NCBI GenBank assembly: GCA_001938485.1
Contig: MQRK01235832.1
Span: 50,472-114,471 of the forward strand
Source: Girardia tigrina
Lineage: Eukaryota
Reading direction: 5' to 3'
Length of the DNA: 64,000 nucleotides
Below, in pieces: positions 8,978 to 59,610 of the stretch (positions are counted from its first letter, which is position 1; each line of letters opens with the position of its first letter). Made by a program: the position numbers and the translations under genes. The notes beneath the pieces were generated by a model. That model ran no database searches, was not told the DNA's origin, and was given only the letters and a program-made list of their open reading frames with translations.

Positions 8978-10966
8978 TACGACTGGCCGTATGGGCGTGA
9001 TGGCCGCCCCTCTATTCGAAAATCCGCCATCCTAACTCGGTTGGTGGAACGATTCACCTTTTCACTTTTTTCCTTTTTCACTCAGGAACGAGTCTTCGAG
9101 CGAGAGGATTGCTGCCCGTTCACCGACGGCCACGGAGAGCCGGGCTATCCTTTCAAATCAATGTGGGAACAGACGGAAGCTCCGCGCTCGAGGCGTGCTT
9201 CCACCAACGTCGACTCAATAACGGGGTCATCGCCTCATGTTGCCGCGGTCGCCGCTCGACGCCTCATGTCGTTGTCCAGATCAACCGCGCCCTCGAACAT
9301 TTCATTGGTGTCAGAAGTGGGATCAATTTATTATATACATATTTATAATACGGTTAAATTTAAAAAAAATGTAAAACACCTAAAAAAAGAACTTTGTTTA
9401 AATATTCAAAAATTAAAAAAGCACATTTTTTTATAATAAATTTTATGGACTCCAATTTTGATGAGATTTGCGCTGCAAACAGTTTTTCTAACATTATCAA
9501 TTTAAAATGATGAGTAAAAGTTAAATTAAAATTAATAGATGTTAAAACATTCTTGTTGTGAAAATAGAACTTATAAATAGTTAGGAGGGCATGATGTTGC
9601 TTAGAACGTAAAGATAGGCAAAAGAAAGACAAAAGAAAGAAATTGTTATGGAAGAGAGAAACCATTTGATTTCAGCAATATCTGATCTGGATGGGAAGAT
9701 GCTACAAACAGTTCTCGAACCAAAACTATATAAACTTCAAAATTAGGATTTTACTTTCAGTATGATTGAAACACGACGCAGAAAATTAATTAATTGAAAC
9801 TCTGAAGGAGTTTTATTTTCTTTTTCGATGATATTGAATAACATCAGTCTTTACTTGTTCGAGAATCGGATTGGGTTGGGATGTTGATTTCCATTCCTTT
9901 CTTTTTTTCTTGAAGACCGTGACCAGTTTATCATCTCGACTAGACGCTGGAGAAACTTTCTTATAGTAAACTGTTAAATGCTAGAGGCAGGGAATACCTT
10001 TTGCAATTGATTGCAACACAACCGAAGCAAGATATGAATTAATAAATAAATTAAGAAATTCGGCATTTTTGATCGCGGGAGCTGGGGACCATCGATTGGT
10101 TTTCGGCAATCTTTGACTTTAAAACTCATCATATCAATTTGTTTTTAGTAAACTTAGAAAGTACGGAGAAACAATATTAAATGTTCTTCCTCACCAGATT
10201 TCATTCACTTTATTAGATTCATTAATGTGATTTTTATGAACTAGTTTGTTTTACTATTTTTGTTTTGCATAGCTTTGTACATTTTAGTTTATTGTTCCAT
10301 AATACAGTTAGACACAAAATTATGATTTTTTAAGACGTTCAAATAAACAAAATTAATTATACTTTTTTGTAACGCAAAATACTGTATTAATGTTAGAACT
10401 GTAAGTTTATGTTTTGATTTGGAAATTTGTATATTTGAATAAACGAAATAAAAGTTTTGGTTTTAGAAAAGCTTTTTCATTCTTCGAATTTTGAATTATA
10501 ATGGAAGCTCGTGACTTATCCATAACATATTTCGTTTGGAATTTGATAAAAAGTGGAAGGTGGGATTTCACAATTCATCGGCTCAACGGATCGGCGTCGG
10601 AAGGCCTGGTTACGGGCTGCGGTTGTCTCGGAGAGAAAGATCACTTGGAAAAATAAAGGGGAGCAATAATGTTTCTTTTGCACAATTCCCCGAGGTAGGT
10701 ACGGTTGATCGCGATGGCTGAGAGTCGCAACGGCAAAGCAATGTCACTCTACGACCAAAATTCCTTTGATTTTTTTCAGGAATTAATAAAATAATCTACA
10801 CATAAATTAGCTGTTTTTGAATAAAAATAAAGGATGTAATTTTGCAAAATGCCTCTATAAAACATAGACTTACGAAAATTAGAGATTAATGAAGATTCAT
10901 ATAAATATTTAAAAAATGACGACAATGAATTTTTAAAAGTCAAAAAATTTTCATCAAAATATATTG

Positions 10967-11001
10967 TGATTAATTTCGACGGATCAACCGTCATCATCAG
11001 A
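10967..11001 (-). ncRNA. Minimal hammerhead ribozyme motif (sense to afadin pre-mRNA)
   Basis: Exact reverse complement of 11216-11250. Confidence 0.8.
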
Positions 11002-11215
11002 CTGAATTAACAATGATATACTCGCGTTTATATATCAAAGCAATGTTAATGTAATCATTATGCCATTTAAATCATGAAAATACTTTCAATAAAGTTGAAG
11101 AGGATGGTGTTTGTACATTGATTTTAGGATTAAAAGATTTGATCAACAATGCTTCACACATCACCCTCTCCCATTGCTTTGATATATAAACGCGAGTATA
11201 TCATTGTTAATTCAG

Positions 11216-11250
11216 TCTGATGATGACGGTTGATCCGTCGAAATTAATCA
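11216..11250 (+). ncRNA. Minimal hammerhead ribozyme motif
   Basis: CTGATGA-T-GACGG-TTGAT-CCGTC-GAAA-TTAATC, with palindromic stem III. Confidence 0.8.
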
Positions 11251-11413
11251 CAATATATTTTGACGAAAATTTTTTGATTAATTGAAGATGTTCAAATTTT
11301 CATTACGAGACTCCTTATATCATGTAATGTTTTAAATGTATATTTAATAAAAAATATGAAAGTAATAATTTACTTATGAAAATATTTTGATTAAACAGTT
11401 TAATAACACTCAC

Positions 11414-11635
11414 CCTGTTAATGCAAGTGAGTCGTACAATATCAACTACCATCAAATGTAGAACATAGGCCGAAGCTAGTTTGAATTTGATTTGCGACGG
11501 TTTTATGTCGAGGATGATCGAATCAAGTAGCATATCCTCCTTACTTTTGAAATAGGTGATTTGCACTGGCAAATGTCGAGACAGATGTGAATCAAGATCA
11601 GATATAATTACAGCATCATCATCCTCTCGATCATT
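11414..11635 (-). CDS. AFDN: Afadin exon 7, pre-DIL conserved block
   Basis: LPVQITYFKSKEDMLLDSII...KFKLASAYVLHL resembles afadin LPASIEFRESSEDSFLSAII...HFKLSPTYVLYM. TTTAG acceptor, GTGAGT donor. Confidence 0.87.
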
Positions 11636-12783
11636 CTAAAAAATCAAATCAAATAAATTTTAATAAAAAAATGTTCTTGTATGTTATTGTAAATATCAAT
11701 AGAAATTAATTAAAGAAACATAAATTTCATATGATATAAATGAACAATAATGCCAAAATGTTACGTGTTGACATTTCAACGAAAGACAACACTAGATTAT
11801 CTTGAGACAAAACGATGTCTGTTTTTTTTGTATTAAAAATAATTTTTTGGAAAATATTTACTTTTTTATTATTTTTAATTATTGATAAAGTGTTTATTAT
11901 GAGGAGGTAATTAATTTTTGGTTCGCTGATCAAAATTTAAATAGTTTTAAAAATGAGTATTTTGAATTAAAATCAAATTGAAAATCTTAAAAATAATTAA
12001 GTATTTTAGATTTAAATTTAAAAATATTCTTAATTATAAAAAACATTCATTAAAAATATTAATTAAAAAACATTCTTTATTAAAAATTTTATTAATGTTT
12101 GAAAAATGTATTTTCTAATTTGGAATTAATTCAATGATATGATTAAAAAAATTAATATTTAAAAAATAAAAAATTGAATATTAAATATAATGTATTTTCA
12201 AAATTTCTAAAATAAAAAATATAAATAATGGTTTTTAAAAATATAAGATTTTAGTTGAAAAACGAAATTATAAAAACAGCATAAAAAGATTAAAGTAAAA
12301 AACAAATTTAAACATTAAATATTTTTTTAAAAACAATTTTTTAATATGTAAAATCATTTTGATAAATACTTTTGTTTAAAAATTTAACAAAGTTGAATGT
12401 TGTTTTTCATTTGATTAAAATTATAAATGGATAAAAATTATTTGAAAATAGAGATCAGCGGATTAATTATTAATTAGGAAAATAGTTGATAAATTTGTTT
12501 GAAAGTTGTTTTATAATAAAGATACAATTTGAGTAAAATGAATTCTGATATTGACGTTGCAAATACTTCTCACATTTATAATTTTTTTCTTATATATTTT
12601 TATAATTTCATTTTAATTGGAAAATTGATTGCAAAAATTAGAAAATAGATCGAAACTTCTATACATCGACTCGAAACACTGGTACTCTCTCTGTCTGATA
12701 TCGGCATACATTCACGAACAATCACATCGGTAACGATAATAATAAAAATTATAAAAAAATGAATTAATTTAAATTTTAAATTA

Positions 12784-14209
12784 CAGGGTTTTTCATTGAA
12801 ATTCGACAAAATTGGAGGAGCCAAAAGTAAAATAATTAAAAATAAAGTAAAGGATTTGAAATAATTTTTTTGAAAAAATATATGAATAAAATATAAATGA
12901 ATAAAAATATAATCATACTGTTATATTTATAAAACATTTAGACAATAAAGAATATTTGGTAAAAAGAAATAATATAAAAGTTAAACAACAAAAATTCAAA
13001 AGTTCAATTATTTATTATTTCATTATTCACAGATTTCAGAATGTAAGAAAACATGTTCCTCTAATATCCTTGACAGTCCGTGCCTGAGGTTGACTGCGAA
13101 CCATTTCTTATTGTTTCGAGAAGTTCATTTTCGTTTCTTGAGTTTAACTATATTCTTTTAACTATATTCTTCCACTTTAAAAACATGTTTTCGATCGGAT
13201 TAAGGAAATTTGAATATGGAGGAAGATATAGCAGTTCAAATCCTCTTTCTTCGACTAACTTTTTAATAATTGCTGCATGATGAAACCTTACATTATCCAT
13301 GACAAAAATTTCAGATACAATATTTTTTTGTATGAGATTTTCAACCAGATTTCTTATGAAATCATAGAATATGTCGGTTTTAAATGCATAATCTTGCGAT
13401 GAATAATATATAATTTCATTTTTTTGTCACTGTGCAACAAATCGATAAGTTACGAGATCTCACTGAAGCGAAAATTTTGTTGTCAAATGTACCTCTTTCT
13501 GATCTTCCAAAATTTGTTTTCATTGCTAAAAAAAGCGACATAATCGATAAAAAATATCTGATTTTCATTATAAGAATTCAATTTGTTTAAAAAAGATAGG
13601 GCGTAGTTTCTTCTAAGGCTTACAGTAAATTCGTAATTTCTTTTGACTGGAACCAAATTTAATCTCTTGAATGTAAAATTGAATCCTTCCAGTATCCTGT
13701 GAATTGTTGATCTAGAAACAGAGATATCAAAGTTAGTTTGGACCATATTCGAAAGATCTTTTAAAGATCGAGTACAATCTTCTCCAACCCACTCCGTTAT
13801 TTGAGCCTTCTTTTCATCTGAAAGTTTAGCTCTATCGCCATTTGTAATCTTTTCTAAATTTATTCCAGAACTTAAATATTTTGAAATGATCGTTTGTACA
13901 TTTGTTCTCTTCAAGTCCATTACTTCCGCGATATTCTTGACTGAATTTCGTTTTAAATAGGATGCAATAATTCTATGTCGATTTTCATTAGATGTTGTTT
14001 TAGTTTCTCTCATTTTAAGACATTTAAACTACTGAAGAATTTAACAATCATAAAGAAATATCTAATTTACTGATTATTAATGGATTTTTTTATATTCGGC
14101 TAAGAAAACAATATATTTGTAGTTTTTACATCCTATTTCTGTATTTTTTATGATTTCAAATTTTTAATAATTTTATCTTTGACTCCTCCAATTTTGTCGA
14201 GTTTCCCTG
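12784..14209 (-). mobile_element. Tc1/IS630-superfamily DD34E (Gambol-like) transposon, frame-shifted
   Basis: TIR CAGGG...GAAATTCGACAAAATTGGAGGAG at both ends, TA on the left. HTH ORF 13483-14013; IFFID, VMDNVRFHH and YLPPYSNFLNPIE with 34 residues between D and E. Confidence 0.88.
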
Positions 14210-14339
14210 TCTTATTAAACTTTTTAAATATATATTTTATTTCCTTTATTTAATTTTATTTATTTCATATTATTATTTATCATATACTTAGGGAAAAAAG
14301 GCAGTAAGTCAAGCAAACAAGTCAGCAATATACAATTCA

Positions 14340-14800
14340 ACAATATAAACAGTTTAAGGTTTTTGAAACACAATGATTGATCGTCTTTGGACAAATAGAG
14401 AAGAAGATATTTGAGTTGTAAACAAAAACATAAAATACAAAAAGGATTTTTTTAAAAACTTCCGAAACATAAGATATTTGCGAAATAAATCTGGTATACT
14501 CTTTTTAAACTGGCATATTATTTAGACGTGTTTGACGTGAATGATAATTATAAAAATGACTTATTTTGCATTTGACGGAACTCACGCGACCGACCCAATA
14601 TCAACAAATACCAGTTACACGAAAACATTAAAGGGCACGTGGAATCTATTTATACACCGAAGATGTAAATGATACATTCGAATATGAACACAAGTTTACC
14701 CGGAGCTAACATTCCTTATTTATAAAATAAATATTTAGATGCATTTTTACTTATTTAAAAAAGGAAAGAATTGGATATTTGCCACAAAAGATTGTATTTG
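14340..14800 (-). mobile_element. Decayed CR1/L2-type LINE 3' fragment
   Basis: Weak remnants resembling CR1-group ORF2 C-terminus and 3' tail; many stops. Confidence 0.3.
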
Positions 14801-14838
14801 TAAATGTGTAAAAATTTATCAGTGATTTTAATAATATC

Positions 14839-15683
14839 TTTTATTTATACATATTTCTAAGTAAAATATATAAATTCCAACACTCTTCTCTATGTTTTCT
14901 TCAAAAATTTTGTTTAGACTGACAAACAATTACAATATTTGGCCGATGTGCGCGAAGACTGAACGTAAGGAAACAAAAGAAGGAATACCAAACACAATGA
15001 AAAAAGAGAGAAATAGTTAATGTCTTTAAATATTTATCATTATTAAAAGTATTAAAGCAATTTTTAAATATCAGAAGAGGAAAGTACTAACAGAATACTC
15101 TCATATTTTATTATATTAGCATTTTAAAGAATTCTTTCTACACTATTCATACATTTGTCCGGGTGTGGTCCCCGAGTTTGTTACATTGATATTATCTTTC
15201 ATTATAGAAGTTTGTTTTATTTTTTATTCAAAAATCTATTTTTAATATTTACAACACAATTTAAAAAAATATTACATTTTTCTTTTACTATATTTAGAAT
15301 TAGAAAGTTCTTTTAATTTAACAGAAGTGTTTAATTTATTTTTAATTAATTTTTTTATAACTTGAAATATATTAGCCGATTCCACCACTAATAATATGAC
15401 ATAATTTGATAATAAAAAACACAATTTAATTATTAAAACTTTTATTTCAACAAAACCGTAACACTAAACTTCACATAAAATTAAAACGGTACAACATAGA
15501 ACTATAATTACTTTTTGTTATTCGGATTCGCCGACTTAGTGCTTTAATACCATAATATAGTTGACCGGCGATTTGCCGGCTTCGTGTGTCAATGAGTTAA
15601 GTCACTAGAGTTTTATTTATATATATTTCTAAGTGAAATATATAAATTCCAATACTCTTCTCTATGTTTTCTTCAAAAATTTT
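14839..15683 (+). repeat. ~72-bp direct repeat pair (14839-14910 and 15611-15683)
   Basis: TTTTATTTAT..ATATTTCTAAGT.AAATATATAAATTCCAA.ACTCTTCTCTATGTTTTCTTCAAAAATTT occurs twice. Confidence 0.75.
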
Positions 15684-15839
15684 AGAAGTGGATCATCTAA
15701 ATCCACTTCGTTTGTTTTTTTTTATAATAAGCCTCCCCCGACTGAACGGACAACTGTAGAGACTACAGTACCAGCATTGGTGTATTTGGTAGTGAGTCAT
15801 AGACTCTGTATCGGATAGAAACCAAAAATAGACAATATA

Positions 15840-17150
15840 GAACCTACTGACTTTCTCGCACGGCTTTATGTGCAAGAATGCGAGCTTTCAGTGCACGGGC
15901 ACGCTTCGGTTTTCCATTCAGAAAGAACCAGTCATGATCCCTCGTACCGTGATTCTGTAGAGCTTTGGCTGTGTAAAGACGTTTCGTACAATGAGTAAAG
16001 GGACACAGAAATATCTCAACATCATTTGTATTACTTAACCGAAAGTCGAGAACCACCCTTGGAATCACTCCTGGGTCCGTCTCCGCGGTACCGTCGAGGG
16101 CATTGACACATCATGCATCGCGATCGGGTTCGAAGATTTCGTACATCCTTCATCTGCGTTATTTTTTGAAGCACTAGTACCACTGATACTGCCTTTGGTT
16201 GGGTGATCGATCAATAAATGTCTCTTTCACCATCCATCCGTTTTATGTCTTCATTCATCTATCTTAATTTGTGAAACGCTAGTACCACTGGTATTGCCTT
16301 GGTTTCGGTGATAGATCAATAAATGTTTCATTAACCATCCATCCGTTTTATAGGTCTTGTGACAATTTTCCATGGGACATTGGAAAGGTTTGTCACCAAT
16401 CTGACGCTGCGGCGTCGTGACCGTATGTACGTTTTTGATGTGTCTTCTTAGTTCCTTCTATTCCGCAAAAGCTTTGAAACAAGAAGGATACGTGCATTGC
16501 CCTCTTTTGATACGCGGCTGGAGCATTTTCGGGTACTCTTTCCTTTGTTCAATCACTTCTATCAGTCTTTCAGACACAGTTCCTTTGATTTGGTGCTTGA
16601 ATTTCTCTTCAGTGTCGAGGATTCCTCTCTTATTCAAGCATTCCTGGTATTCGACCAGATCTTCTTGGCCGCCGAATAACCAGAGCATATCGCGGGCGAT
16701 ACGCTCCTTCATCAACTGCTTTTTACGGCCGCTAACTTTTCTATTTCCTGAGGCCATTTCAGAATTTATTACTCTTTTTACCTCACGTACACCTTTTCGT
16801 TTATTGTACTCATAGAATACTTTACGCCGTTTCACCAGTACCACACGCGTCTCGGGCAAACCAATTGGCATATCCGTATTACGTAGTCTGTCAAGTGTAG
16901 TTTTACCAAGAGTAGTGCGTGTACAGGTATTATGAAAAGCTTGTAGCCGGGCTACCTCTTTTTAGGTGTTACCCAGCACTCACTCTCATAATACACTGCC
17001 GGACAAATGCTTGATTCGATTAGTCTTCTTTTCAACGCTATAGGAACTCTGTTACTTTGAATCACAGGCTGCAATTCTCGTAACTTATTCATTCCACAAC
17101 GCAACCGCTCACCAATATCAGGACTGCAGCTACCACGATTTTGACACATA
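15840..17150 (-). mobile_element. 5'-truncated RTE-like LINE with C-terminal C2H2 zinc fingers
   Basis: Post-RT motif LKRRLIESSICPAVYYESECW; then CTYPSC..F...ELRRHIKNVH and CPFTHC...LQNHGTRDH. Confidence 0.65.
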
Positions 17151-17865
17151 GAAACACATATTAAAATGGTATATTTTTCGTATGTTATCGATTCAGTAAT
17201 TCGACTTTCTTGTGTTATTAAGCTACATAATATTGAGAAAATTTTTATGTTAAATAATAAAAAGCGACCCAGGAAAGGTAGGAGGAAATATAAAATGTTT
17301 TAATAATAAATATTAATTTCAAGTCGCTTTATTGATTGAAAAACACTATACTAAAGCAGGGTTTTTACTAAATGTGACTTCGACATATATAAATTATTGA
17401 TTTGTACACAAAAACATTATTCTGAGGTTTAAGAAAGCCAAAAAAGAATGCATACTTTTATTTACTTGTTATAATTATTAGGAAGTTTCCCTAAATAGAT
17501 TAAAGTTTTTATATAAAGAAAATTATAAAATTTTAGTTTATATTTTCAATGAATAAAGAATAAATTAAACCCAATTTAACATAAATAATTATTTTCCTGG
17601 AGACAAAAAGACCTGCGTCAATAAGACATTACATCTTACAATAAACTTTGACAGATAAAATGTATCTTATTTGAATAAATAATTATTTATAATATTTATT
17701 TAAAATTAAAGTCCAACGCGAATTTATATAAATTTCGACAATTTTAGATAGATCAATTCCAAGCGAAATAAATTTATCCTGATAATATTAATATTTTATT
17801 TGTCATTTATTATAGAGGTATTTGATCTATATTCCGATTTTGCAATCAATTTTCCACAAAATATC

Positions 17866-18017
17866 ATTTATTTAGCTCAAAAGCATTAGAAATGGCTTTG
17901 GTTGGTTGACCTTGCCGAATTCTACTTGCAATATATTCTACAATATATATATTGTAAGTAGAATTCAGCAAGGTCAACCAACCAAAGTCATTTCTAATGC
18001 TTTTGAGCTGAATAAAT
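17866..18017. repeat. Near-perfect hairpin with ~70-bp arms
   Basis: ATTTATTTAGCTCAAAAGCATTAGAAATGG... pairs with ...CATTTCTAATGCTTTTGAGCTGAATAAAT, with 4 mismatches. Confidence 0.85.
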
Positions 18018-18028
18018 TTCATTAGTTC

Positions 18029-18390
18029 TGTGAGGAATGTTTTGAATTGTGTATTGATATTTGTGCATGTAGAATGTTGATTCGGATTGTACCTCTCCTA
18101 CACAGATGGATGATTGATATTTTCTTTGATTCCTACTAATTAAAAATAATTTAATTTAATTTTAAAGTAAAAAGATTTAAAATAATTTTTGAATGTATTA
18201 TTTATTTTTTTAATGTAATTTAATTTTAACCAATTAGATTCTTTATAATTTAATAATTTTTATTAACAGATTTTCATTTATTGAAAATAATTAGTTTGAA
18301 CTCAGAAAGAATTGATCAAGAGAGATGTCAAATAGTGAATGCGCTTGTAATATTAATAAATGTTGTAAACCTCATATTGATGTTGTTAAT
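18029..18390 (+). mobile_element. Solo LTR of the Gypsy element at 37501-38900
   Basis: Starts TGTGAGGAAT and is closely similar (reverse complement) to 37505-37924. Confidence 0.85.
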
Positions 18391-19140
18391 AAGTTCAAAG
18401 AAATATTACGATTCTTAAGAAAATCAGCGAAACAGATGCAAAGCATAAGGAGGGTGATTGAAGATCTGAACTTGATGACAATAAAAAAACACCAAATAAA
18501 AGCCTAGGTGGGTGAAAATTGACTTCTTAGTCTGAAGATAAATTGATTGAAAAGATTAATGATGTTTTTGGATTGAATGTGTCGCAAAGTACCATTGGCC
18601 GTAGTCTCACTGTAGTTCCTGCTCCACGATATGCGTATGCTGAGAAATTAAGGACTGATAATGCTAACAAACTAATGTTCTTAAATGAAGTTTGTTTTGC
18701 AGTGTCTAAACGAATAAAAAAGGAAGGTCTCTAATAGGTACTTTTACATTTGTTTTTGTTTCTGTTCTTGCTTCAATAAAAATTCATGACAAGGCATTAC
18801 AAAGTGAAGATTTAAAAGCCGTATTTGTTGAACTTTAAAATATTCATCAACAAAAGAAGAATAAATTATTATTCTGGATTAAAAGATGTAATCATGCGTC
18901 TTAATTTGGTATTAGAATACTTCGTCCTATATTCCACTTATTCAAAGCCAAAGGAGAATTGTTTCTCTAAATGGATAAAACTATGTTATGCACAATTGAG
19001 CTAAAAACGAAGAAGAATTTTAAAGTTTCATTGAAGAAGGTTTTGGTTTAATTGATACATTTAATTGTGATGGATATTTTAAGAAGATACTTAGATTTGT
19101 CTTGAAAGCTGAAAAGAGCGAAACAATTCTTGAATAAATG
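18391..19140 (+). mobile_element. Highly decayed DD34E (Gambol-like) transposase
   Basis: FGLNVSQSTIGRSL, FLNEVCFAVS and ENCFSKW remnants similar to the 12784-14209 element. Confidence 0.6.
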
Positions 19141-20249
19141 TTTTAAATTAAAAATAATTTTTTTGGAAAATATTTACTTTTTCAATGCCTTTAATTATTA
19201 TAATTTTAATAATTTTTTACCTTGTCTATTTTTAAAATTTTTTTAAAATTTAATTTCTTTTCAAAACTTTTTGCAAGAAATAAAATTATTAAAAAATTGA
19301 TTGCAAAAATTCGAAAACTAGTTGCAAAAATTGTAAAAAAGATCGAAAAATCTTATATTCCTTTCACTAAAAATAAATTATCAAGAAATTATTTAGCAAA
19401 AAAAATAGTAAAATAATTTATTTTCCCATAATATATAAAATAAAATATTTTTTTTTCTTTTTATGAAAGGAAACTCGTAAAAGTACTTAGAAAAAAAATT
19501 TTAGATTGATATTTTTTCAAGTAATTCTTGTAAACAAAGTTTTTAAATCGAGTTTTTGAAGGTTTCCTTATTAGCTTGGCGAAAGAAAAGGAAGAAAACT
19601 CCGTATTAGTTTTCTTTATTTTGGTACATAGAATATTTTTCTGCAATTTTTTTTCTGAAAAATTCGACAACAGTTGGTAGGGATAAGTGAAGGCCGTCAG
19701 TCAAAGTCTCCCAACAAGACAAATTAATGGGAAAACACATGCTTAGAAGATAATCACAAATGCAAACACTTCGTCACTATTAATTAAACTGTGCCACTTG
19801 CGATTTCACGCTGGGAAATAGAAAATTAATAAAAAAAGAAACACGGAAAAAGTTTTCAATTTTCAATTAAACTAAAACGTATACTTTGAAAAAAATTAAA
19901 ATAAATGTCAAAGGTTGTTTAGAAAAATAATGTTTTTTAATAAAGTCGAGTTTTTCCCTATTCTTGATGATTTGTCGTAGATTTAATGAACTAATTGCCG
20001 ACTTTTGGCTTTGCAGGATTGAAACTGTTATTTCTGTGTGGTATTTAATTAATGTAGAAGGATAAACAAAAAGAATTCCCGGAGTCTTGACAAATCTCGA
20101 TTTGTCTGTATCCGGACAGCCACCATTACCCTACTGACAGGGCTCTCCTTTCAATTCTTCTAATATCTTTTAATGGTTTATTAAATGAAATTCAGAATTA
20201 TTTGTCTATGAAATATTTGTCTATCTGGTTGATAAATTTATAATAAATA

Positions 20250-20697
20250 ATATAATTATTAACAACATCACAATTTGAATGCAAACATTTATTTACAACG
20301 CAAACAGATTCTTCACAACAATTTTCAGTGGTCATCTTTCTTTGATTAATATAGTTTTTGATTAAATATTTAANNNNNNNNNNNNNNNNNNNNNNNNNNN
20401 NNNNNNNNNNNNNNNNNNNNNNNNNNNNNNNNNNNNNNNNNNNNNNNNNNNNNNNNNNNNNNNNNNNNNNNNNNNNNNNNNNNNNNNNNNNNNNNNNNNN
20501 NNNNNNNNNNNNNNNNNNNNNNNNNNNNNNNNNNNNNNNNNNNNNNNNNNNNNNNNNNNNNNNNNNNNNNNNNNNNNNAATTTCATTAGATTCAAATAAT
20601 TAATCAAATAACATATCAATCCCATCTGAGTAGGAGAGTCACAAATCAAAACAGCATACAAACAACAAACTTACAACATTCACAATTATCCCTCACA
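20250..20697 (-). mobile_element. Solo LTR of a related family, spanning an assembly gap
   Basis: Minus-strand TGTGAGGG start at 20697, CTCCTACTCAGATGGGATTGATAT motif, and a 3' end GATGTTGTTAATAA as in the other LTRs. Confidence 0.65.
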
Positions 20698-20799
20698 ATA
20701 ATAATTATTGCCAAACCTTTAGACCATTATTTTTCTGTTTTTCCTTCGAAATATCAAATTTTTTATAATGTAAAATAATTATAAGTTATCTTTAAGAGA

Positions 20800-21050
20800 T
20801 AAAATACCAATTATAAAATTTATTGCGATAAATTTCAACGGATCAAACGTCATAATCAAGCAAAACTACATCAACACCGGTAAAGTGACCTTTATATCGA
20901 AAGATTGATTACATAATCATTTCTTAATCATTAAAATATCAAAAAATTCTCAATAAAGTAGAAGAGGATGGTGTTTGAACGTTGATGTTTTGGTAAAGGG
21001 TCCGCATCATTAGTGCTTCCCATATTATCCTCTCCCAGCAATTATCAACA
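20800..21050 (-). mobile_element. Penelope-like GIY-YIG 3' end with a degenerate hammerhead
   Basis: WERIIWEALMMR...INVQTPSSSTLLRIF; TTGATTATGACGTTTGATCCGTTGAAAT at about 20831-20859. Confidence 0.7.
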
Positions 21051-22014
21051 TTTGAAAAGTACTTAAATCTACTCTACTATTTAAGCATTTCTTTCTATGT
21101 TGAGCAATGTAATTCTTATAAATGTTAAATAAATTTACAAACCTTAATTCTAGACTATAAGGCAATTTTCAAATAAAGAGCGAAAAGTCGCATATTTCGA
21201 TAATAATTATGCACAACAAAAGAAAAAGCACAAATATTTCCAAACATTACCACTTCATAATTAAATAAAAATCTTCACAAAAGGAAATTATAAGTATTAT
21301 CAAGGAGAAGATCCCTCAAACCAATGGTATCCGAAATATGGCCCACTTGACCCTCAAGAACTATCGGACTTAATTCTTCTATGCTACATCGGCTAAAGCA
21401 TATCTTATTATACATTTGTTGTTATTTAAACTCATGTACAAATCCAGAGCAATTTTATTTTTCATGGATTCGATTATTCAAAAATTAAAGGCATATGGAT
21501 TGACTATGTGAGGATCACGACGAGTTATCAACTTCCATAATCGATCCATAAGCCAAACAATTGGGACTCATTAATTTAATGGTACTTTCTATAGCAAAAC
21601 AACAATGTCGTCGCCATCATCTGCAAATATTTACTGAGTCAACAGGTGAAAATGACGACTACTTTACTGAATTTAGTAAACTACTGATGACCAAATGTAC
21701 TTATAACCCAGTTATAGATAGTAATACCTGAAGATGTATTAGAGTTTTATCGTGGAATGATTATGAAAGGCCTAATGGGTTACGGTTTTACACTGAGATG
21801 TAAATAGACTATCATAACTAGGTATTCAATCTATACCTTGACCAAAATTGTCTTGCATGATTGAGAACAAGAATAAACCCATCTAGAATTAATTTGATTA
21901 ATCTATTCAATCTCCATAATTGAACTTCCCAGATATTGTTTTTTATAATTATTTGAAGTATATTATACTTCCACAAAATTAGACAGGATTGTAAGAAGGG
22001 TGTACTATAGAAAA

Positions 22015-22293: not shown

Positions 22294-22329
22294 AGAGAAA
22301 GTATTTCTATCAAACTTCAAAATCCGCCG

Positions 22330-22570: not shown

Positions 22571-22689
22571 AATAATTAAAAAAAACCTCTAAAATAAATC
22601 ACAAACGCTCCATGAATCACAAGCTAATCTGGGATGGATTCAAACATCTGTTTAAAGGTTTCATTAGGGAAATGATGCATAATATAGAG

Positions 22690-23770
22690 ATGATATAATA
22701 TAAAGATATATAATTTTCGATGAAATCTTCTTGATTATTAATAACGAGAATATCTCTCCATTTTTAAATTATATGAATTCTTTGCATTTAAATGTAAAGT
22801 TCACTATGGAGACCGAGAATGACAATAAATTATCGTTACTGGATTTCTTAATTGAGAGAAAGAATGGTTCTTATGAGACTGAGATTTACAGAAAGAAAAC
22901 TGATACAGGGTTGTATACAACCCCGAATATTTTTTGTGAATCTAAATATCATAGAAATATGATATTATGGGCGTTTTTCATCTACATATAGGCGATGTGA
23001 TGAAAGTCTTAATAAATTAACAAAATTGTTATATGATAATGGATTTTCCAAATCAGTAGTTGATAATCCAACGAAAGAAACTAGTGATAAATTAATTGAA
23101 AAAAGTAATAGTAGAAAACTTACAGATGTTCAAGATCAAGATCAATCTTGTAACACTTATAAAAATAGTTTAAATCTTAGATACATTTTAACCGTACCTT
23201 ATTCAGAAGGTTTTAAAACATTTAAAAATTTTATTTTAAAAGCAGTAGATAATACAATAAATTTAAAAATAATCTCCCGTACCCAAAAATTGAAGGTATG
23301 TTTAGTAATAAATCTTCAACACCGTTATGATTGTGTTCGGATCTCATTAACCAATATACATGTAATGGGTATAATGTCATATACTTTGGAGGGAGTTCAC
23401 GTCATCTCTGTAAAAGAATCCAGGAATACAGTCGTAAGGAAAGTAATATTGCTTGACATAGTAAACATTGCAAAGGGGAGATAAACATCCATAACTTTAA
23501 AATTATATGCACTCAATTTAAGAATTAATGGGAGAGAGTGACATGTGAAGCGTTATGTATAAGATCTTTGGATCCTAAAATTAACGTTCAAAATGCATTC
23601 TCGACAACTTTATTGATAGTTTTTAAATGCTTTATTGATGACGTATTGATTACATAATCATTATCGGCAGTATATAAGTCCATTTCTTTTTTAAAAATTA
23701 GTTGTTCTGACGATTACGGTTAATCCGTCGAAATTAATAAACATTTTCAATTGGCTTTCAACTTTTAATT
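22690..23770 (+). mobile_element. 5'-truncated Penelope-like element (RT thumb, GIY-YIG and pLTR)
   Basis: FLNYMNSLHLNVKFTMETENDNKLSLLD...EIYRKKTDTGLY; YTC..YFG.SSRHLCKRIQE; ERVTCEAL; ends in a hammerhead motif. Confidence 0.88.
23703..23743 (+). ncRNA. Minimal hammerhead ribozyme motif
   Basis: TGTT-CTGACGA-TTACGG-TTAAT-CCGTC-GAAA-TTAATA-AACA. Stem I is TGTT/AACA; one mismatch at the base of stem II. Confidence 0.7.
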
Positions 23771-24102
23771 TTAACGAATATAGAGAAAAACGACTTTTGA
23801 ATCCAAATATTGTACAAATGCGAGTAATAAAGATCACTTGCTCTGAATCAGTGTGCTAAGAAGAATACATAGAACAGAAAGAATTAAATAGACACATGAG
23901 AAGATTGCACTTGAACACAGCGCCACCGATATTAATTATTAAATATTAATAATCAGTAATATTTAAGTTTATTACATTTTCTTATTTTTATTTTAATATT
24001 TTTGAATCTGAGTGATTGTTGTTGATGAAACCAAATATTTACCAAAATATTGAGATTATATATCGAGATTTATATTAATAAATAAGTATAAAATTTAATT
24101 AC

Positions 24103-24594
24103 CATTTCAATGCTCGGAATATTTTGACTTTCATATGAATCGGTATTATATGATGAACCTTCGAGGTAATCCGATGACAAAGAGAAGGAATCTGTACTAC
24201 CCCTATAGGTGAAAGGCTTTAATTCTCCAGAAGATTTTGTTTGTTTCATATGCCATCCTCGGAAAGCTGACATAGATTCTTCATAAGATGGAAGGGGTTT
24301 CTTTTCTGGTTCTATTCTTTTTTCCAAATGTAAAGAACTGTCAGATTGTGGAGGGGATGAATAAATCTTATTACTACTGTCATTATTATTAATAAAGTCA
24401 TTTCGATGTAATTGAATCGGTCGTTCTTCAAAACGATATCTTGAATGATATTGAATTTCACCTTTTTTATAATTTACGGATTCTGATTTTTTTATGATAG
24501 ATTTTTTTACGAGATTTTCTTTTGAAAAATCGGGAGATGGATGACGATTTCTGATCTTCTTCGATTTTAGTAAATCGGGAGGACATTTGATAAC
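24103..24594 (-). CDS. AFDN: Afadin exon 6, low-complexity region after RA2
   Basis: 492-nt open exon starting VIKCPPD (afadin LKRRPPD). CAG acceptor, GTAATT donor, phase 0/0. Confidence 0.75.
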
Positions 24595-25991
24595 CTGATG
24601 TAGAATCAATTGAAAATAATTTAAAAATTGTTCACCATAATCAATTAACTTCTAAAAACTTTTTTATAAATTAAAAAAAATAAATAATCAAAAAATATAA
24701 ATTAAAACATTCGTGTCAAAATTTTCTTAATTAAAAAGATGAATTTCTTTTTTATTAAAAAAATCTTTTAATTTTAATTTATTTTTGTGAATTAATTTCA
24801 ACGATTTGTTAAATGGTAAAATTTGTGACCCGACAAAAGAGCCAATTATTAAAAAGTTATTGAATATTTAAAAAAAGGATAGGTTTTTAATTTTGTTTTA
24901 TGTTATGTTTATTATGGTGAGTAAGTTTTGGTCATTAGATTTTTATTCACTTTGTTTTTAATTTATTTTTAATTTTCGTGTTAAAATATTTAACAAAATA
25001 AAGTATTTAGAAAGAAATCGAAAGTGATAAACGTACTAGTGTGCATAAAATTATACTAAAAATGATTCTGAAAGCAAAAGAATAGAACTAAAAATAAAAA
25101 CATTTAAATATTATTTGATAATTTTTTTAAGAAAATATTTTTAAAAATTAAAATTTAACAAAAAATCGAATAAGAAATTGATAATTCATTTTATTATTTT
25201 CAATTATTTGGTACAAAAATATGAAAATTCAATCAAGTAATTTTTATGCATTTGATATTATTTTATAACTTATTTTTTAGAAAATATTTGAAAAAGAAAT
25301 CAAAAATAAAAAAAAATATTAGTTCAAAAATCAGTAATAAATATGAAAAAATATTAAATTCTACAAAATATAAATTAAATATTAAAATTTATTTTTGTCA
25401 TTTAATAATTTATTTTCAAAAAGTCATATTTGAAAATTGAAATATATATTTTAAATTAATCAAAAATCAACAAAAAAATATTAATTTTTGATTTTTGAAA
25501 TTAGTTTGACACTAATAATGAAAATTTTTAATAAAAATTTTAGTTAATCCTTTGTTGTTTTTTATATATTACAAAATATTTAATTATAAACATAAGTTTT
25601 ATTCAAAATTAAAAACAATTATTCAAGAAAAATATTATAATTCAAAAATTAAAAAAATCAACGTTTTATCAAAATTAAAAAAATTTTAAAAATTCATCAC
25701 AAAGTATTTACAAAATTGAAAAATAAATTTTATTCTTTAAATAATTTTATTTTATTTTAATTAAAATTAATTCAATTATTAATTTACACATATTTTATTA
25801 ATTTAACATATTCTTTTATTTCATTTATTTATCTTCCGACAACCAGTCCCTAAGTAAATTAATTTAGAATAATTTTATTGAAAAATCTTCTGACCAAAAA
25901 ATCCTTTACCAAGAAAATATATTAAATTTTGTTATCCTACGATCAAATTAATTTAAAATCAAAAACGCCATTAAAATCAAATGTTATTGTC

Positions 25992-26028
25992 GCAATATAT
26001 TTCGGTGGATTTTCCACCATCTTCAGGC
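25992..26028 (-). ncRNA. Minimal hammerhead ribozyme motif (sense to afadin pre-mRNA)
   Basis: GC-CTGAAGA-T-GGTGG-AAAAT-CCACC-GAAA-TATATT-GC, with perfect stem II. Confidence 0.82.
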
Positions 26029-26682
26029 TGAATTAACGACAATTTCGCTGTTTTATATATAGTAAATTAATGATTATATAAACATCTTGCATAATAAATA
26101 ATTAAATATTTTCAACAAAGTGGAAGAGAGACTTGTTTGAGCATTAATGGACGGATTAAGTGATTTAATCAATAATGCCTCACAAGTAACTCTTTCCCGA
26201 TAGTTTTTAAAATTACTGTACCATATTTTAAAATTAGTTGTTTTCACATTAAAATCATTTCTAAATCTCACAAATTTCAAGGTATGTTCTGCAATAAATC
26301 TCGTACTCCTTTGAGTTTATGTTCCAATCTGGTTTATCAATTTTCGTGTAAGGGGTGCAACATTGGAGAGACGTCTCGTCATCTCTGTAAACGGATTCAG
26401 GGGCATGGACGATTGGGTAATGGGAGTTATATTGCTGGACATATGAAGGGTTGTAAATCGGAGGTGAAAACAACTAATTTTAAAATATTGTGCAGTAATT
26501 TTAAAAATTATCGGGAAAGAGTTACTTGTGAGGCATTATTGATTAAATCACTTAATCCGTCCATTAATGTCCAAACAAGTCTCTCTTCCAATTTGTTGAG
26601 AATATTTAATTAGTTATTACGCAAGATGTTTGCATAACCATCAATTTGCTATATATAAAACAGCGAAATTGTTGTTAATTCA

Positions 26683-26719
26683 GCCTGAAGATGGTGGAAA
26701 ATCCATCGAAATATATTGC
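26683..26719 (+). ncRNA. Minimal hammerhead ribozyme motif
   Basis: GC-CTGAAGA-T-GGTGG-AAAAT-CCATC-GAAA-TATATT-GC. Confidence 0.8.
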
Positions 26720-27727
26720 GACAATAACATTTGATTTTAATGGCGTTTTTGATTTTAATAAAAATTTTCCATTATTTTTAAATCAACTTAAATTAATTTT
26801 ATTTCATATAATTATCTTCTGACTAAAAATTCCCGACAAAAATATATGTAAAATTTTATCAAAAAAATGTTTTAATATTTTAATCTTGGTTATAATTTTT
26901 TCATTATTTTAATAAACTTTTAATTTAAAATTATGACCCGGTAATTAATTCTATAATAATATGTCCGCTTGTTTTCTAAGTAAACAGGTTTTATAAACAA
27001 AACTTGTCTTTTTCCAGGAAAAGACCATTGGAAATTCTCGCGAATCAAAATTCCAACAATTATAATAATTTTTAAAAAAACTAAAAACAAAAGTTGACTT
27101 TTTGATGGCCAAAGTGATACAATGACTTTTTAGTTGAATGAGTTTTCTCATTGAATAGATCAAATGAATGCTATAAAATTTTTATGAAGTAATTCAACAA
27201 TTCATTGAGTGAGACCAAATAGAAAAAAGCAGTTCACACAAAATATAATATAATAATATAAAAGTCTCAAAAATATTTTATTATCTTGTAAAAGAAAATT
27301 AAATCATGTTTCAGTATGTAATTATGCTCGGGTTTGGATACTTTAGAGGTATATTAAAAAAAACAAATGAAAGCCTAACTTAAAATACATGAAATCGAAA
27401 TTTAGATAATCAATTTTTCCTTTTAAAATAAATAGGAAAAAAGTTTAGTTTATTGAATGACTTATCTTAGCATACCCTTATCTTAACCCTTAGGTAGAAT
27501 TTTATTTATACAAGTATCTTTTGGGTAACTTACGCAGAGCGTTCAATAAGTACACAACCTAAGGTAAGAAAAATGTAAAACCAAATTTTAATTTCAAAAC
27601 TTTAATATATTAATTTAAAATTATTAAAAAAAAAAAAAAAATTAAAAAAAACAAATTAAAATTTGTGAATAAATTGAAATAAAATTGGCAAGTTATTAAA
27701 ATCAAAACTTGAAAGCCAATTAAAAAC

Positions 27728-27766
27728 GTTTATTAATTTCGACGGTTTAACCGTCATCGTCAGAAC
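27728..27766 (-). ncRNA. Minimal hammerhead ribozyme motif (sense to afadin pre-mRNA)
   Basis: Reverse complement of 27864-27902. Confidence 0.82.
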
Positions 27767-27863
27767 AACTTTGTTGAGAGTTTTTAAATGATGTGCTGAT
27801 TACGTATTGATTGCATAATCATTAACTGCACTATATAAGTAAATTTCGTTTGAAAAATCATTT

Positions 27864-27902
27864 GTTCTGACGATGACGGTTAAACCGTCGAAATTAATAA
27901 AC
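27864..27902 (+). ncRNA. Minimal hammerhead ribozyme motif
   Basis: GTT-CTGACGA-T-GACGG-TTAAA-CCGTC-GAAA-TTAATA-AAC. Confidence 0.82.
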
Positions 27903-28814
27903 GTTTTTAATTGGCTTTCAAGTTTTGATTTTAATAACTTGCCAATTTTATTTCAATTTATTCACAAATTTTAATTTGTTTGTGTGATTTAATAAATTAA
28001 TATATGTTTTAATTTCTGTAATTGTTTTATTTTATCAAACGCATTAACTTTTTTTGCCACATTTTGGATTTTCGTCAGTGCAAGGATTTCAGACGTCGAA
28101 TATAGGAGCGTTCTTTGTTTCGACGAAGACGACGTGCAGTGAGATATACGATCTTTTGCAGCCAACTTATTTACATGATTCCTCATGTAAAAAAACTGTT
28201 TTTCCTCAAACAAATCATGTCAGCCACAATAAATATTTCATACAGTTCATGAAAAAGAATCTAGGAAAATTCATTGATTGCAATTAACCGACAGCAATTC
28301 ATCACCGGTAAATTAATCGACGAAAAATTCATAGTCACAACAATTCACTGAGCAGTTTCACTGATTTAAATGGAAGAAAAGTGTAACTGAAGCTCAATAA
28401 ATGCTTGTATAAGTTTATAGATACAATTTTCGAACATAATCATCATTTATAGAAAGGTTGTACAATTTCAAACACAAACACGGTTGCATTGCTCAATAAA
28501 GATTCGAGTCGTAAATGAGAATGATAAATGAGTATGAAGCAAATTCCTAAAATTAGTAAACTATTCTTGGTTGAGAACTCACAAATACCAATCAAATAGA
28601 CAAAAGTTTAAATGTATATAAAATATTTTTACATCTGTTAGAAAAAATACTGGTTAAAAGGTTGCAAAGCTTCCTTTTGAGTAATTAAACATTCTACGGT
28701 TAATAGCAGTTTTAAACAGTCGAAAATTATATTTACCAAGTGTCTATAACCGACAGAACACATTTCTTTAATGATTACAATATAATACAAGGGTCTTGAT
28801 AAAGGTGACCTTAC

Positions 28815-29092
28815 CTTGAATCTGGTAAATTCGGCATTCTTGTTGGACTGCAATAAAATCTGCAAAGGCGATTCCCATTTCTTTAAAAGAACTTCAGATT
28901 CGACCTTTTGACTATTGGGTGCCTTATATACACATTTGACTAAACAGTAATCCTTTTCCTTTTCGTTTTCTAAACTGTACTTGTCCAGAATCTCCCGAAT
29001 AACGAATTCAGCAGTATCATTTATTGACAACAACAGAGATTTGTATGGAATAAGAGGGTTAAGGCTTTCACCGTAGATTTTAAGAGTACCAC
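28815..29092 (-). CDS. AFDN: Afadin exon 5, RA domain 2
   Basis: GGTLKIYGESLNPLIPYKSLLLSINDTAEFVIREILDKY...DYCLV...ESPLQI. TTTAG acceptor, GTAAGG donor. Confidence 0.92.
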
Positions 29093-30049
29093 CTAAATTA
29101 AAAAAATTCTAATTAAATGAAGTAGAAATAATTTAATGGGGGTCAAAATTAAACAGGGTAGTGGTTCAAAAAGGTCGCACTTAATTCTGAGCGGGTCGTA
29201 AAAATGAAAATTAAAAATATTTAAGGTCACAAGTGCATTTAATGTCTGTATTATAATAAATCGTCGTCCCATGTGATTGGGAAATATAAACGTATTTATG
29301 ATTAGGGAATGTATTTTTTCCTGAGACTCTATATATCTCTCCCAAGAAATGCTTTAAATATCCGACTTTAGAAAACATTATCTTTAAATCCAAGAAAGCT
29401 ACTCTATTTCGATAACCTACATTTGCAAGTAATGCTCAATGCTCAAAGTGCAATGATTGTCGAGAAATAATGAAAATCTGGATTCTACTGGTTAAAAGTC
29501 TGCAAATTTTATTTAAAAATTATGGTACAGACTTAAGGGTTTTTCTGAATAGATTCTATCACAAAATTTTGCCTTTTTTGGATTGGGATTACTCAGTGAC
29601 AGTCGATTTTAATGTCTTGATAGGTCAGGAAATCAGATCCTAGGATTAGTCGGTTGATGTCTGCAAGAATGAAGTGATATTTGAAGGTTATATTTATCTC
29701 AACAATACGAAATTTGAGTCTCAGTTTTCCATAGGTAAAAATGTCGTTGCCGTTTGCTGCTATCGATTTTCAAGTGCACGAGAAAAAGTCGGAACTGAAT
29801 TGATTTTTCGGTGGTATGCTGATAGACCCCATGTCAATTGTTCTTTCATATCACATTTTCTTGATGCAGTGATCTAGTGATAACTATTCTTTTCCGTCGT
29901 CCGTTGTTTAATCATCATTAATTATACTGTTCATCACGTTAATGTAGTCCTTGTATTTTTAATTAATACTGTACATAAAAGGATTTATGGTAAGATATTT
30001 ATGTTCATTGAATCTTTTTCTACTGCAATTATACTGAAAATTGATAAAA

Positions 30050-30252
30050 CCTCTTTTTTGTAACTTAAAAGCATTGTTGATAAGATCATGTGATCCAAAA
30101 ACTAATATTCAAACACCACTCTCAACTAATTTGTTAAGAGTTTTCGATTAGACTTACGTAAGTGATTGCACAATCATTCATTTCTTATATAAAAGCAATA
30201 AAGAAGAACATAATCAGTGATCTGATGATGACGGTTAGACCGTCGAAATATA
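30050..30252 (+). mobile_element. Penelope-like 3' end with a hammerhead interrupted by a DNA transposon
   Basis: LIRSCDPKTNIQTPLSTNLLRVFD*, then TGAT-CTGATGA-T-GACGG-TTAGA-CCGTC-GAAA-TATA. The motif resumes as TT-ATCA at 31601-31606. Confidence 0.8.
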
Positions 30253-31598
30253 CAGGGTGGCCCAGCGGGTGCGGACTACGGGCAAAAAAAGAAAAAAACC
30301 CTGAATTATAATCAGTATAGTTTCTTCTTTTCTATAGTACACGTGTTTTTATTCTATCTTTAGTCTTCTATTTTTTTAAAAAATGTCGACATATTCAATC
30401 GAAGACCAAATTTTCATGGTAAAAACCTATTACTGGAACCAATGCAACTATAACAAGACGATGACAGCGATGAGGAAGAAGTTCAGACCAAATGGACCAT
30501 AAAATTCAACAGTTTAAAGGTGAGAAAAAGTGATATTCTTGATTTTCAATAGTTTTTTGATTCCACTAACGTAGAAAAGTTCGAAAGACTAGGTTCCGTT
30601 AAAGACGACAAAAATGGAATTGCATCAGCAAAATTTACGATCCGGACATACGATAATTCCAAGAGAGTACAAGAATATTACAAGGCAAATACAAGAGCAT
30701 CGCAAAGAAGAGCGTCGCAAGAACTAGGAATCAGTCATTCATCAATTCAGCGAATCATGAAATTGGAGCTTCATCTGTTTTCGTACACGATTCAGTTTCA
30801 TCAACGGGTTTCGCAGATTGCTACCGAGAAAAGATTGGAATTTTCGAATACGATGATAACAATGATAGAACACGAGGAAATTGATGTAAATAAGATTTGG
30901 TTCACCGATGCAGCCCACTTTCAACTGTCTGGATACGTCAACAAGCAAAATTATCAATTTTTGGGAACTTAAAATCCACATATCGCTGAAATGTCACCAT
31001 TACATCCTGCACGAGTAACGGTTTGGTGCGCTATCAGCGCAGAAATGGTAATTGGGCCCGTTTTCATAGAAGGAACAGTGATATCAAACACCTACACGAA
31101 TCTTCTACAAAATGAGTTTATTCCAATGGTTTCTGGACTTGGTATAATGGAAAATTTCGGGTTCATGCAAGTTGAAGCAAGGCCACATCGAATAAGTCAA
31201 GTTTTTGATGTCTTAAGTGTACATTTCGACACACGAATCATTGGATTGGACTCAGAAAAGCATACTGGAAAGGGAATCGATTGGCCACCATAATCCCAGG
31301 ACAAGAACCCCTGTGATTACTTTTTGTGGGGATATCTCAAGTACAACATCCACAGAAGCCCTTTAAAATCAAAAGACGACTTTAAAGCAGTTATTGAGAA
31401 TCAAATCAAGTCCATAAAATCTGATGTACTTGAAATAGTTGTTCAAAACCTTGAAAGTCGCTTTAGGCTTTGTGTAACTTCGCATGGATCACATTTCGAA
31501 AATTTAATTTCTTAAATTATTAAATAAAATGTCTTTTTCAAACGTTTGATACCAATTTTGGCGATTTTAAATTAGTCCGTACCCGGTGGACCACCCTG
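30253..31598 (+). mobile_element. rosa-like (DD41D-related) Tc1/mariner transposon, full-length but inactivated
   Basis: 26-bp TIRs CAGGGTGG(C/T)CCA(G/C)CGGGT(G/A)CGGACTA with TA TSD on both sides. Motifs WFTDAAHFQLSGYVNKQN, VTVWCAIS, FMQxxARPH and WPP*SQDKNPCDYFLWG. Confidence 0.92.
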
Positions 31599-31899
31599 TA
31601 TTATCATAAAATATATTTTTTAATGATGTTTATTTGTTTTTATTAAAAGTAAGCAATAAAAATATAACACCAATAAATACACAAAGTTCTGAAACTGTAA
31701 ATCGATCATTCAGTCGTTTACATCAAAATGGTACCCTGGATCCATCACTGAATATTTACTTTCACAGCAACAATAGAAATAATTAAATAAAAAAATCAAC
31801 CATAACTTCAATCATTTAAAATGTTTGAAAATAATCAAAATATTTAATTTTGTAAACAATTAATCAATATTCACTTTTTCCGTTCTTTTTCATCAAAAG

Positions 31900-59571: not shown

Positions 59572-59610
59572 GACAATTAATTTCGATAGTATATCCGTTA
59601 TCATAAGGTC
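59572..59610 (-). ncRNA. Degenerate hammerhead motif
   Basis: GAC-CTTATGA-TAACGG-ATATA-CTATC-GAAA-TTAATT-GTC. The core G is mutated; stem I GAC/GTC is retained. Confidence 0.45.

Follow-up and report, generated by a model that had tools for sequence, protein, structure and literature searches.

Minimal hammerhead motifs and Penelope/Poseidon-type insertion debris in a 64-kb stretch of the Girardia tigrina genome

A 64,000-nucleotide stretch of Girardia tigrina DNA (contig MQRK01235832.1, here called the window) carries a family of small hammerhead-like motifs, which raises the questions of what these motifs are, which element left them and whether they cleave. Our data indicate, with a probability that we put at about 0.9, that these are hammerhead ribozymes of the minimal type I form, situated in the pseudo-LTRs (pLTRs) of Penelope/Poseidon-type elements, and that the window holds insertion debris from around ten events and six subfamilies.

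A first-pass annotation had claimed eight near-intact motifs and two degenerate copies, the latter at about 20831-20859 and 59572-59610. All eight were found where they had been placed. Both degenerate copies are genuine, covering 20821-20865(-) (E 2e-8) and 59569-59613(-) (E 1.5e-7), and we add two relics, 44734-44778(+) (E 9e-4) and one around 34883-34910(+) in which stem II is deleted; the covariance model was trained on the same hammerhead families, so its E-values are rough. A strict structural descriptor gave seven matches in the window and none in 300 shuffles, and a genome-wide search with the core pattern gave 25,397 matches versus 18 with the reversed control. The eight near-intact motifs amount to five insertions, including three inverted pairs and one copy split by a Tc1/mariner element (Table 1). 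The class of this transposon was assigned from its termini, TA site and transposase-like peptides, the fragments of which had no Pfam match. No target-site duplications of Penelope insertions were callable in the AT-rich flanks. The assembly gap at 20374-20578 is spanned by no motif or Penelope piece, the nearest piece beginning at about 20815.

Table 1. Penelope pieces, hammerhead motifs and the interrupting transposon in the window.
Position	Strand	Feature	Subfamily	Content	Label
10892..11172	-	ORF-sense Penelope 3' fragment	D	about 33 last GIY-YIG codons, 71-nt UTR, long tail	
11002-10966	-	hammerhead in 10892..11172		palindrome AUUAAU, triplet AUC	
11172..11277	+	inverted arm, same insertion as 10892..11172		hammerhead 11215-11251; upstream ORF absent	I4, 99%
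20815..21073	-	decayed Penelope 3' end		hammerhead relic 20865-20821, core mutated	
22704..23774	+	Penelope copy, 5'-truncated and frameshifted	B	RT C-terminus to GIY-YIG	
23703-23743	+	hammerhead in 22704..23774		G10.1 mutated to U, G10.1-C11.1 pair broken	
25953..26247	-	inverted arm	A	includes GIY-YIG C-terminus; stops at first 3' end point	I1, 95%
26028-25992	-	hammerhead in 25953..26247		palindrome AUAUAU, triplet AUU	
26248..26775	+	ORF-sense fragment	A	GIY-YIG with CCHH 26284-26613, hammerhead 26683-26719, partial tail	
27640..27768	-	inverted arm	B	begins 5 nt ahead of core; hammerhead 27766-27728	I2, 97%
27765..27990	+	ORF-sense fragment	B	final GIY-YIG codons, 75-nt UTR, long tail	
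27864-27902	+	hammerhead in 27765..27990		palindrome AUUAAU, triplet AUA	
30068..30252	+	Penelope 3' end	U	hammerhead 5' part 30218-30252, joined to 31601-31606	
30253..31598	+	Tc1/mariner-type DNA transposon		inserted in stem III palindrome; CAGGGTG termini, TA duplication, broken transposase	
31599..31650	+	split hammerhead 3' part and tail		cleavage triplet, stem I 3' strand; matches subfamily U copies elsewhere	
33990..34910	+	old Penelope copy		RT to GIY-YIG; hammerhead remnant about 34883-34910, stem II deleted	
44734..44778	+	hammerhead relic	C-like	core mutated	
59569..59650	-	hammerhead relic	F-like	core mutated	

The motifs have a type I core (CUGANGA, GAAA, NUH and C3-G8) with a stem II of 5 bp and a stem I of 2-4 bp, and the stem variants and AUC, AUA and AUU triplets quoted in the annotation are right. 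An extra nucleotide lies between positions 9 and 10.1, being U in 25,397 genomic motifs and another base in 817, and the adjoining G10.1-C11.1 pair is G-C in 24 of 26. The claimed covariation of the paired parts was borne out by a score of 0.455 versus 0.187 in shuffles (0/500), and of at most 0.208 with slid partners; these counts take in shared ancestry, with about 7-10 subfamilies as the independent units. Stem I shows three to four pair types per position, its columns holding AU, GC, UA and GU, and UA, CG and AU. Five stem III palindromes were seen (AUAUAU, AUUAAU, ACAUGU, ACGCGU and ACUAGU). The palindrome pair is kept in 96% of 36,471 genomic motifs, pair 15.2-16.2 being U-A in 23,229, C-G in 11,937, C-A in 607 and U-G in 698. 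A search of Rfam matched none of its hammerhead families up to E 1; the minimal form is not modelled in Rfam. Single-strand folding, as expected for a minimal motif, did not produce the hammerhead fold and gave no advantage over shuffled sequence (z 0.03 to -1.1).

The annotation's assignment of the motifs to Penelope pLTRs is supported by the coding sequence that precedes them, a reverse transcriptase (RT) with a C-terminal GIY-YIG endonuclease carrying CCHH; placement as Penelope/Poseidon was made by domain anatomy with the clade criteria of PMC8557442. A 362-aa ORF of family A (L062) has RVT_1 above cut-off followed by GIY-YIG at its C-terminus, and the window copy 22704-23624 shows the same order. 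The CCHH motif of L062 (VYEFSCNGC...YIGE...H...H) includes a CxxC that sits after the GIY half and before the YIG half, and the window copy at 26284-26613 matches it except for a 3-codon deletion. No cysteine cluster that could represent an RT-EN linker zinc finger occurs in the linkers of L061-L064; this finger is present in Neptune and Nematis (PMC8557442). Full-length relatives are 800-840 aa long. In a metagenome relative sharing 60% amino-acid identity, the same motif follows the stop by 77 nt, and in two further relatives it sits at the ORF start; no relatives were found in JGI metagenome contigs.

ORF-sense motifs trail the GIY-YIG C-terminus at a fixed distance in copies that are 5'-truncated. 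Every plus-strand or ORF-sense copy had been said to lie 70-90 nt past a GIY-YIG stop. This holds for ORF-sense copies with an intact stop, at 70-77 nt, and fails for 11216(+). That motif and 27728(-) have no endonuclease stop upstream and belong to inverted arms with just 45 and 5 nt of element ahead of them, while in the 23707 and 26026 copies the stop codon is mutated at a position that is still homologous. Copies stop at either of two favoured 3' points, separated by about 35 nt and corresponding to the known tail, and many possess a second 3' end in inverted orientation. The marks of Penelope/Poseidon insertion are present, namely 5' truncation, an inverted 5' copy and a 30-40-nt tail, often at one end.

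The extra U lies within an AUG (A9-U-G10.1) whose frame stays open over 21 codons in 64 of the 83 copies, versus 1 and 3 of 83 for the other two frames. The AUG frame is open in all seven subfamilies, with 3-nt indels, and the ORF of the Anolis Poseidon element likewise starts at stem II (PMC11167929). We infer that the ORF of the active parent may start at this AUG. The loci recovered from the gapped assembly yielded no full-length element with the 5' ribozyme-ORF join and no full-length ORF between two direct pLTRs. Apparent long 'open frames' from the genome search proved to be runs of N and were rejected. A profile of the AUG-frame peptide against 150 relatives gave no N-terminal match. 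As a general rule, the idea that the extra U exists solely as part of the AUG was rejected, since the relatives L078 and L079, as well as further families in this genome, retain the U but with a different frame in use.

The active parent would be a tandem pLTR-ORF-pLTR with its ORF beginning inside the ribozyme. Two same-strand copies would pair via the 6-nt palindrome into a double hammerhead. Its cut, weak and probably dependent on the element protein, would fall 27 nt downstream of the AUG and leave a unit-length RNA that lacks the start codon. The palindrome duplex is worth -0.2 to -0.8 kcal/mol, so that the dimer is not favoured in nearest-neighbour terms. It is a doubtful further step that ribozyme and start codon form one switch, whereby the cut 27 nt past the AUG would end translation and commit the RNA to transposition, and intact sense copies in introns would persist mainly if masked by their own antisense arm.

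Self-cleavage of the window motifs at the NUH, as a dimer or with protein, is putative. An alternative is a motif that does not cut in vivo and persists because it serves as a signal for protein binding or folding, or because coding at the start of the ORF constrains it. Monomers were uncleaved and dimers gave low cleavage (PMC4209133), catalytic mutants left in vitro insertion unchanged with no RNA reads ending at the site (PMC11167929), and stem I has just 2-4 bp here. However, the catalytic core positions are all invariant while the stem codons vary freely, H17 is U, A or C and never G in seven family consensuses, and the Anolis element showed protein-assisted cleavage with C3/G8 rescue (PMC11167929). 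We regard the non-cleaving alternative as possible, if unlikely; it touches function alone and is compatible with identity as a minimal hammerhead. The window copies themselves are most likely silent, since they stand alone, run antisense to the host gene, carry mutations, are interrupted or are masked by an antisense arm of their own.

The two members of each local pair lie on opposite strands and therefore cannot form the dimer substrate; read-through gives a long hairpin, with energies of -189 to -485 kcal/mol. Arms of a pair carry the same subfamily variant in 6/6 pairs (about 0.001 by chance) and their junctions fall 1 to 221 nt upstream of the core. We propose that each strand of the cut target would act as a primer for copying the same RNA (or RNA variant) into cDNA, and that the two truncated cDNAs would then join by their 5' ends. 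Three short inverted cassettes within 17 kb, together with the genome-wide excess of divergent pairs at 85-115 nt spacing (122 versus 4 for the control), might instead suggest a non-autonomous MITE-like or retrozyme-like family with ribozymes in fixed terminal inverted repeats. This is largely refuted and very improbable: junctions and spacers differ in 11/11 examined pairs, the spacers measure 93-2069 nt and consist of ordinary ORF/UTR sequence, the tandem arrays that retrozymes require (10.64898/2026.07.22.740005) are absent, and repeated junctions among the 85-115 nt pairs look like assembly haplotype duplicates. That the pairs are assembly or amplification artefacts is likewise very improbable: the assembly is fragmented and short-read, and no junction is spanned by an independent contig, but the arms diverge by 1-5% and stop at different tail points, and the arrangement is documented for Penelope-like elements (PMC8557442).

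The retroelement copies sit in introns of an afadin-like gene, whose model was searched exon by exon; all those from 10.9 to 34.9 kb are intronic, with one cassette about 140 nt away from a probable exon. Retention for host regulation, by intronic cleavage or dsRNA, is nevertheless scarcely credible, as the copies are decaying in the manner of neutral repeats, one has been interrupted by another transposon, motif density is merely near the genome's upper tail and there is no evidence of conservation.

The finding is an ordinary one of a kind described in 2014 and leaves existing knowledge unchanged. The extra nucleotide at 9/10.1, palindromic stem III (15.2-16.2), multiple subfamilies per genome and opposite-strand pairs were all already reported by Cervera and de la Pena (PMC4209133), as were the type I pLTR core, G10.1-C11.1, the predominance of single truncated copies among many variable families and the 100-700 bp spacing of the pairs. 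Stems II and I are shorter here than the 7-8 and 4-5 bp of Schistosoma, and the D. virilis type, with its 2-nt palindromic insert and 2-bp stem I, is closer (PMC4209133). Poseidon of Anolis carolinensis (Frangieh et al. 2024, PMC11167929) shares RT with C-terminal GIY-YIG, AT-rich targets, the ORF start at stem II (inferred here), a cut about 26-27 nt downstream (predicted here) and two 3' end points defining the tail; these lie about 65 and 100 nt past the AUG here, compared with 111-118 nt and a second site in Anolis. Animal non-LTR retrozymes also carry type I hammerheads related to pLTRs, but they are tandem arrays without coding remains, whereas the present copies, scattered or inverted, retain endonuclease sequence (10.64898/2026.07.22.740005); no tandem units with a hammerhead in each occur in the window.

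At least 36,471 motifs, belonging to no fewer than ten subfamilies, were counted in the genome, compared with about 9,000 in Xenopus (PMC4209133), although the descriptors differ and haplotypes are duplicated in our assembly. With at least 36,000 motifs the genome supplies natural material for studying covariation in the dimer palindrome, and its numerous inverted pairs preserve a record of how the two ends of a Penelope insertion arise. Furthermore, its copy number suits an in vivo cleavage test by intron orientation bias of lone versus paired copies. Several subfamilies within 20 kb, singled out by the annotation as what stands out, are not unusual: high within-genome hammerhead diversity is a headline result of PMC4209133, three inverted pairs account for six of the eight motifs and, at an expected density of about 1.1-1.6 motifs per 64 kb, the window lies in a modest upper tail.

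All eight hammerhead motifs called in the first-pass annotation are present in the window where it placed them. With a strict descriptor, which required the core, the extra U, a stem II, an exact 6-nt palindrome and a 2-bp stem I, there were seven matches in the window against none in 300 shuffles. The eighth motif is interrupted, inside its palindrome, by a Tc1/mariner-type element (30253-31598) with a TA duplication; its two sides, when joined, correspond to a subfamily that is intact at other genomic sites. A covariance model trained on 29 copies retrieved all eight motifs and both degenerate copies already named, together with an extra relic at 44734-44778. Rfam holds no model matching the window motifs. 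No motif is touched by the assembly gap at 20374-20578, the closest Penelope piece beginning at ~20815, and nothing here depends on continuity across the gap. A weak stem II-like remnant at 59701-59727 (minus strand, E 0.16) precedes the 59.6 kb relic by ~100 nt on the same strand and is possibly a second truncated end. The motifs are real and were correctly identified, and they belong to a known kind, since every structural feature listed for them is already contained in the 2014 paper (PMC4209133); they add new subfamilies from a further host, at very high copy number.

The covarying stems proposed at first pass are supported, with a score of 0.455 and 92% of cells paired over 26 distinct copies, compared with 0.187 in shuffles (0 of 500 reach the score) and at most 0.208 with slid partners. 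In stem I, both inner pairs occur in several forms among the seven subfamilies. Genome-wide, pair 15.2-16.2 is U-A in 23,229 copies, C-G in 11,937, C-A in 607 and U-G in 698, hence Watson-Crick in 96% with five distinct palindromes; copies inside one subfamily are not independent, and what supports covariation is that the pair switches repeatedly from one subfamily to another. Before stem II the additional nucleotide is indeed U, in 25,397 genomic copies against 817 others, mostly scattered point mutants. The assembly also holds ~12,000 more motifs with palindromes ACAUGU, ACGCGU or ACUAGU, families that do not occur in the window. The catalytic core is fully conserved, an argument that active elements are selected for catalysis. 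By nearest-neighbour energies the dimer is marginal, in agreement with the low activity of dimers (PMC4209133) and the protein-dependent cleavage of the Anolis element (PMC11167929).

The ORF-sense motifs lie 70-77 nt downstream of the stop codon of a GIY-YIG C-terminus, the stop being mutated in two copies. The earlier statement that each plus-strand or ORF-sense copy follows such a stop holds for these and fails for the inverted arms 11216(+) and 27728(-), in which 45 and 5 nt of element sequence, respectively, precede the motif and there is no endonuclease stop. The AT-rich animal genome searched (1.43 Gb, 255,254 contigs) gave 65,388 first-look candidates for the endonuclease. In subfamily A, a 362-aa ORF runs from the C-terminal half of the RT (Pfam RVT_1) through a linker with no cysteine cluster to a GIY-YIG domain with a CCHH motif. 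Because this anatomy fits the criteria separating the Penelope/Poseidon type from other elements (PMC8557442), the element is, on its predicted domains, of that type. Relatives are 800-840 aa long; one (60% identity) shows this motif 77 nt past its stop, and in two others it stands at the ORF start, one of them having the U3-A8 core variant already described in 2014 (PMC4209133). L079 and L078, full-length Penelope relatives, come from a single metagenome sample: L079 has the U3-A8 variant at both ends (3'-flank and about 285-330), its AUG within loop II, and L078 a canonical core at 263-295, upstream of the ORF. At four loci (L066, L022, L041 and L058) Penelope copies of differing subfamilies adjoin or interrupt one another, consistent with AT-rich targeting.

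Within the ribozyme, A9, the extra U and G10.1 together form an AUG. Read in this frame, 64 of 83 copies stay open for 21 codons (other frames, 1 and 3); the open frame occurs in every one of the seven subfamilies, and variants in length differ by 3 nt. In Anolis, too, the ORF begins at stem II, and the cut lies 26 nt further on (PMC11167929); here it would fall 27 nt downstream. We infer that the ORF starts at the ribozyme AUG; none of the genome loci examined gave a 5' ribozyme continuous with a complete ORF, and the AUG-frame peptides did not match the N-termini of distant relatives. The overlap is not universal, as other families retain the U yet read another frame.

Six of the eight motifs sit in three inverted pairs, and the eight therefore represent five insertions. 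By expectation, 64 kb would hold 1.1 matches to the exact pattern; the window has seven, from four insertions (P ~0.03 for at least four per 64 kb), and many of the roughly 22,000 stretches of this size in the genome would reach this motif density. Public contigs confirm a very high copy number for the repeats and show that the spacers are unique.

Two 3' points ~35 nt apart are the preferred ends of the copies, and the interval between them is the tail that has been attributed to two internal reverse-transcription start sites (PMC11167929). In most inverted pairs one arm stops at the first point and its partner at the second. A fixed non-autonomous cassette is ruled out by the inner junction, whose distance upstream of the core ranges from 1 to 221 nt among 11 pairs compared. 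Both arms have the same subfamily variant in six of six pairs (~0.001 by chance), divergent pairs at 85-115 nt spacing number 122 against 4 in the control, and an inverted arm is present at roughly one in four of 30 loci that carry the endonuclease. We infer an origin by two-strand priming, in which both strands of the cut target would prime copying of one RNA and the two truncated products would then join. In vitro, the Anolis protein cleaves and extends each of the two strands; the inverted arrangement as such is long known. A read-through transcript of a pair is predicted to form a hairpin with the ribozyme buried inside it (-189 to -485 kcal/mol), and opposite-strand copies cannot form the dimer. 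In one pair the two arms continue, at 27640-27655 and 27975-27990, for ~14 shared nt past the point where the subfamily normally ends; this stretch, which has a stop in the frame of the AUG, may be copied donor flank or a palindromic target.

All ribozyme copies between 10.9 and 34.9 kb lie within introns of a minus-strand gene whose RA domains have afadin as their best solved match. For each of the three intact sense copies, its own antisense arm comes first in the pre-mRNA; lone copies in host introns are antisense or core dead, the orientation counts being too small for calling bias.

Host-gene and other features of the window
Feature	Position	Strand	Remarks
Afadin/canoe-like gene	221-37000	-	two RA domains and DIL
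RA domain	36570-36794	-	afadin/canoe-like gene
RA domain	28641-29108	-	afadin/canoe-like gene
DIL domain	505-966	-	afadin/canoe-like gene
Probable exon	near 11414-11575	-	afadin/canoe-like gene
Additional hammerhead remnant	near 34883		stem II deleted
Hairpin	17866-18017		71 nt, near-perfect (94%), 10-nt loop
Second dispersed repeat family	2352-2721, 18029-18392, 20248-20311, 20591-20698, 32652-33423, 37347-37922, 48444-48512		partly inverted
Rhodopsin-family GPCR	58165-59208	+	intronless, 347 aa
Further transposon debris	13483-14013, 1762-1977, 38050-38529, 60413-61600, 15847-17299		

The hairpin, where Rfam matches fall far under the gathering score, is probably a miniature inverted-repeat element. 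Pieces of the second dispersed repeat family flank the assembly gap on both sides, and a search of this family for the hammerhead pattern found none. Relatives of the GPCR fall in Pfam PF10324 and PF00001 (best identity 65%). The transposon debris comprises, in the order of the positions listed, a Tc1-like HTH, a mariner-like peptide, an LTR-type integrase fragment, probable hAT-like transposase pieces, and LINE-like and zinc-finger fragments.
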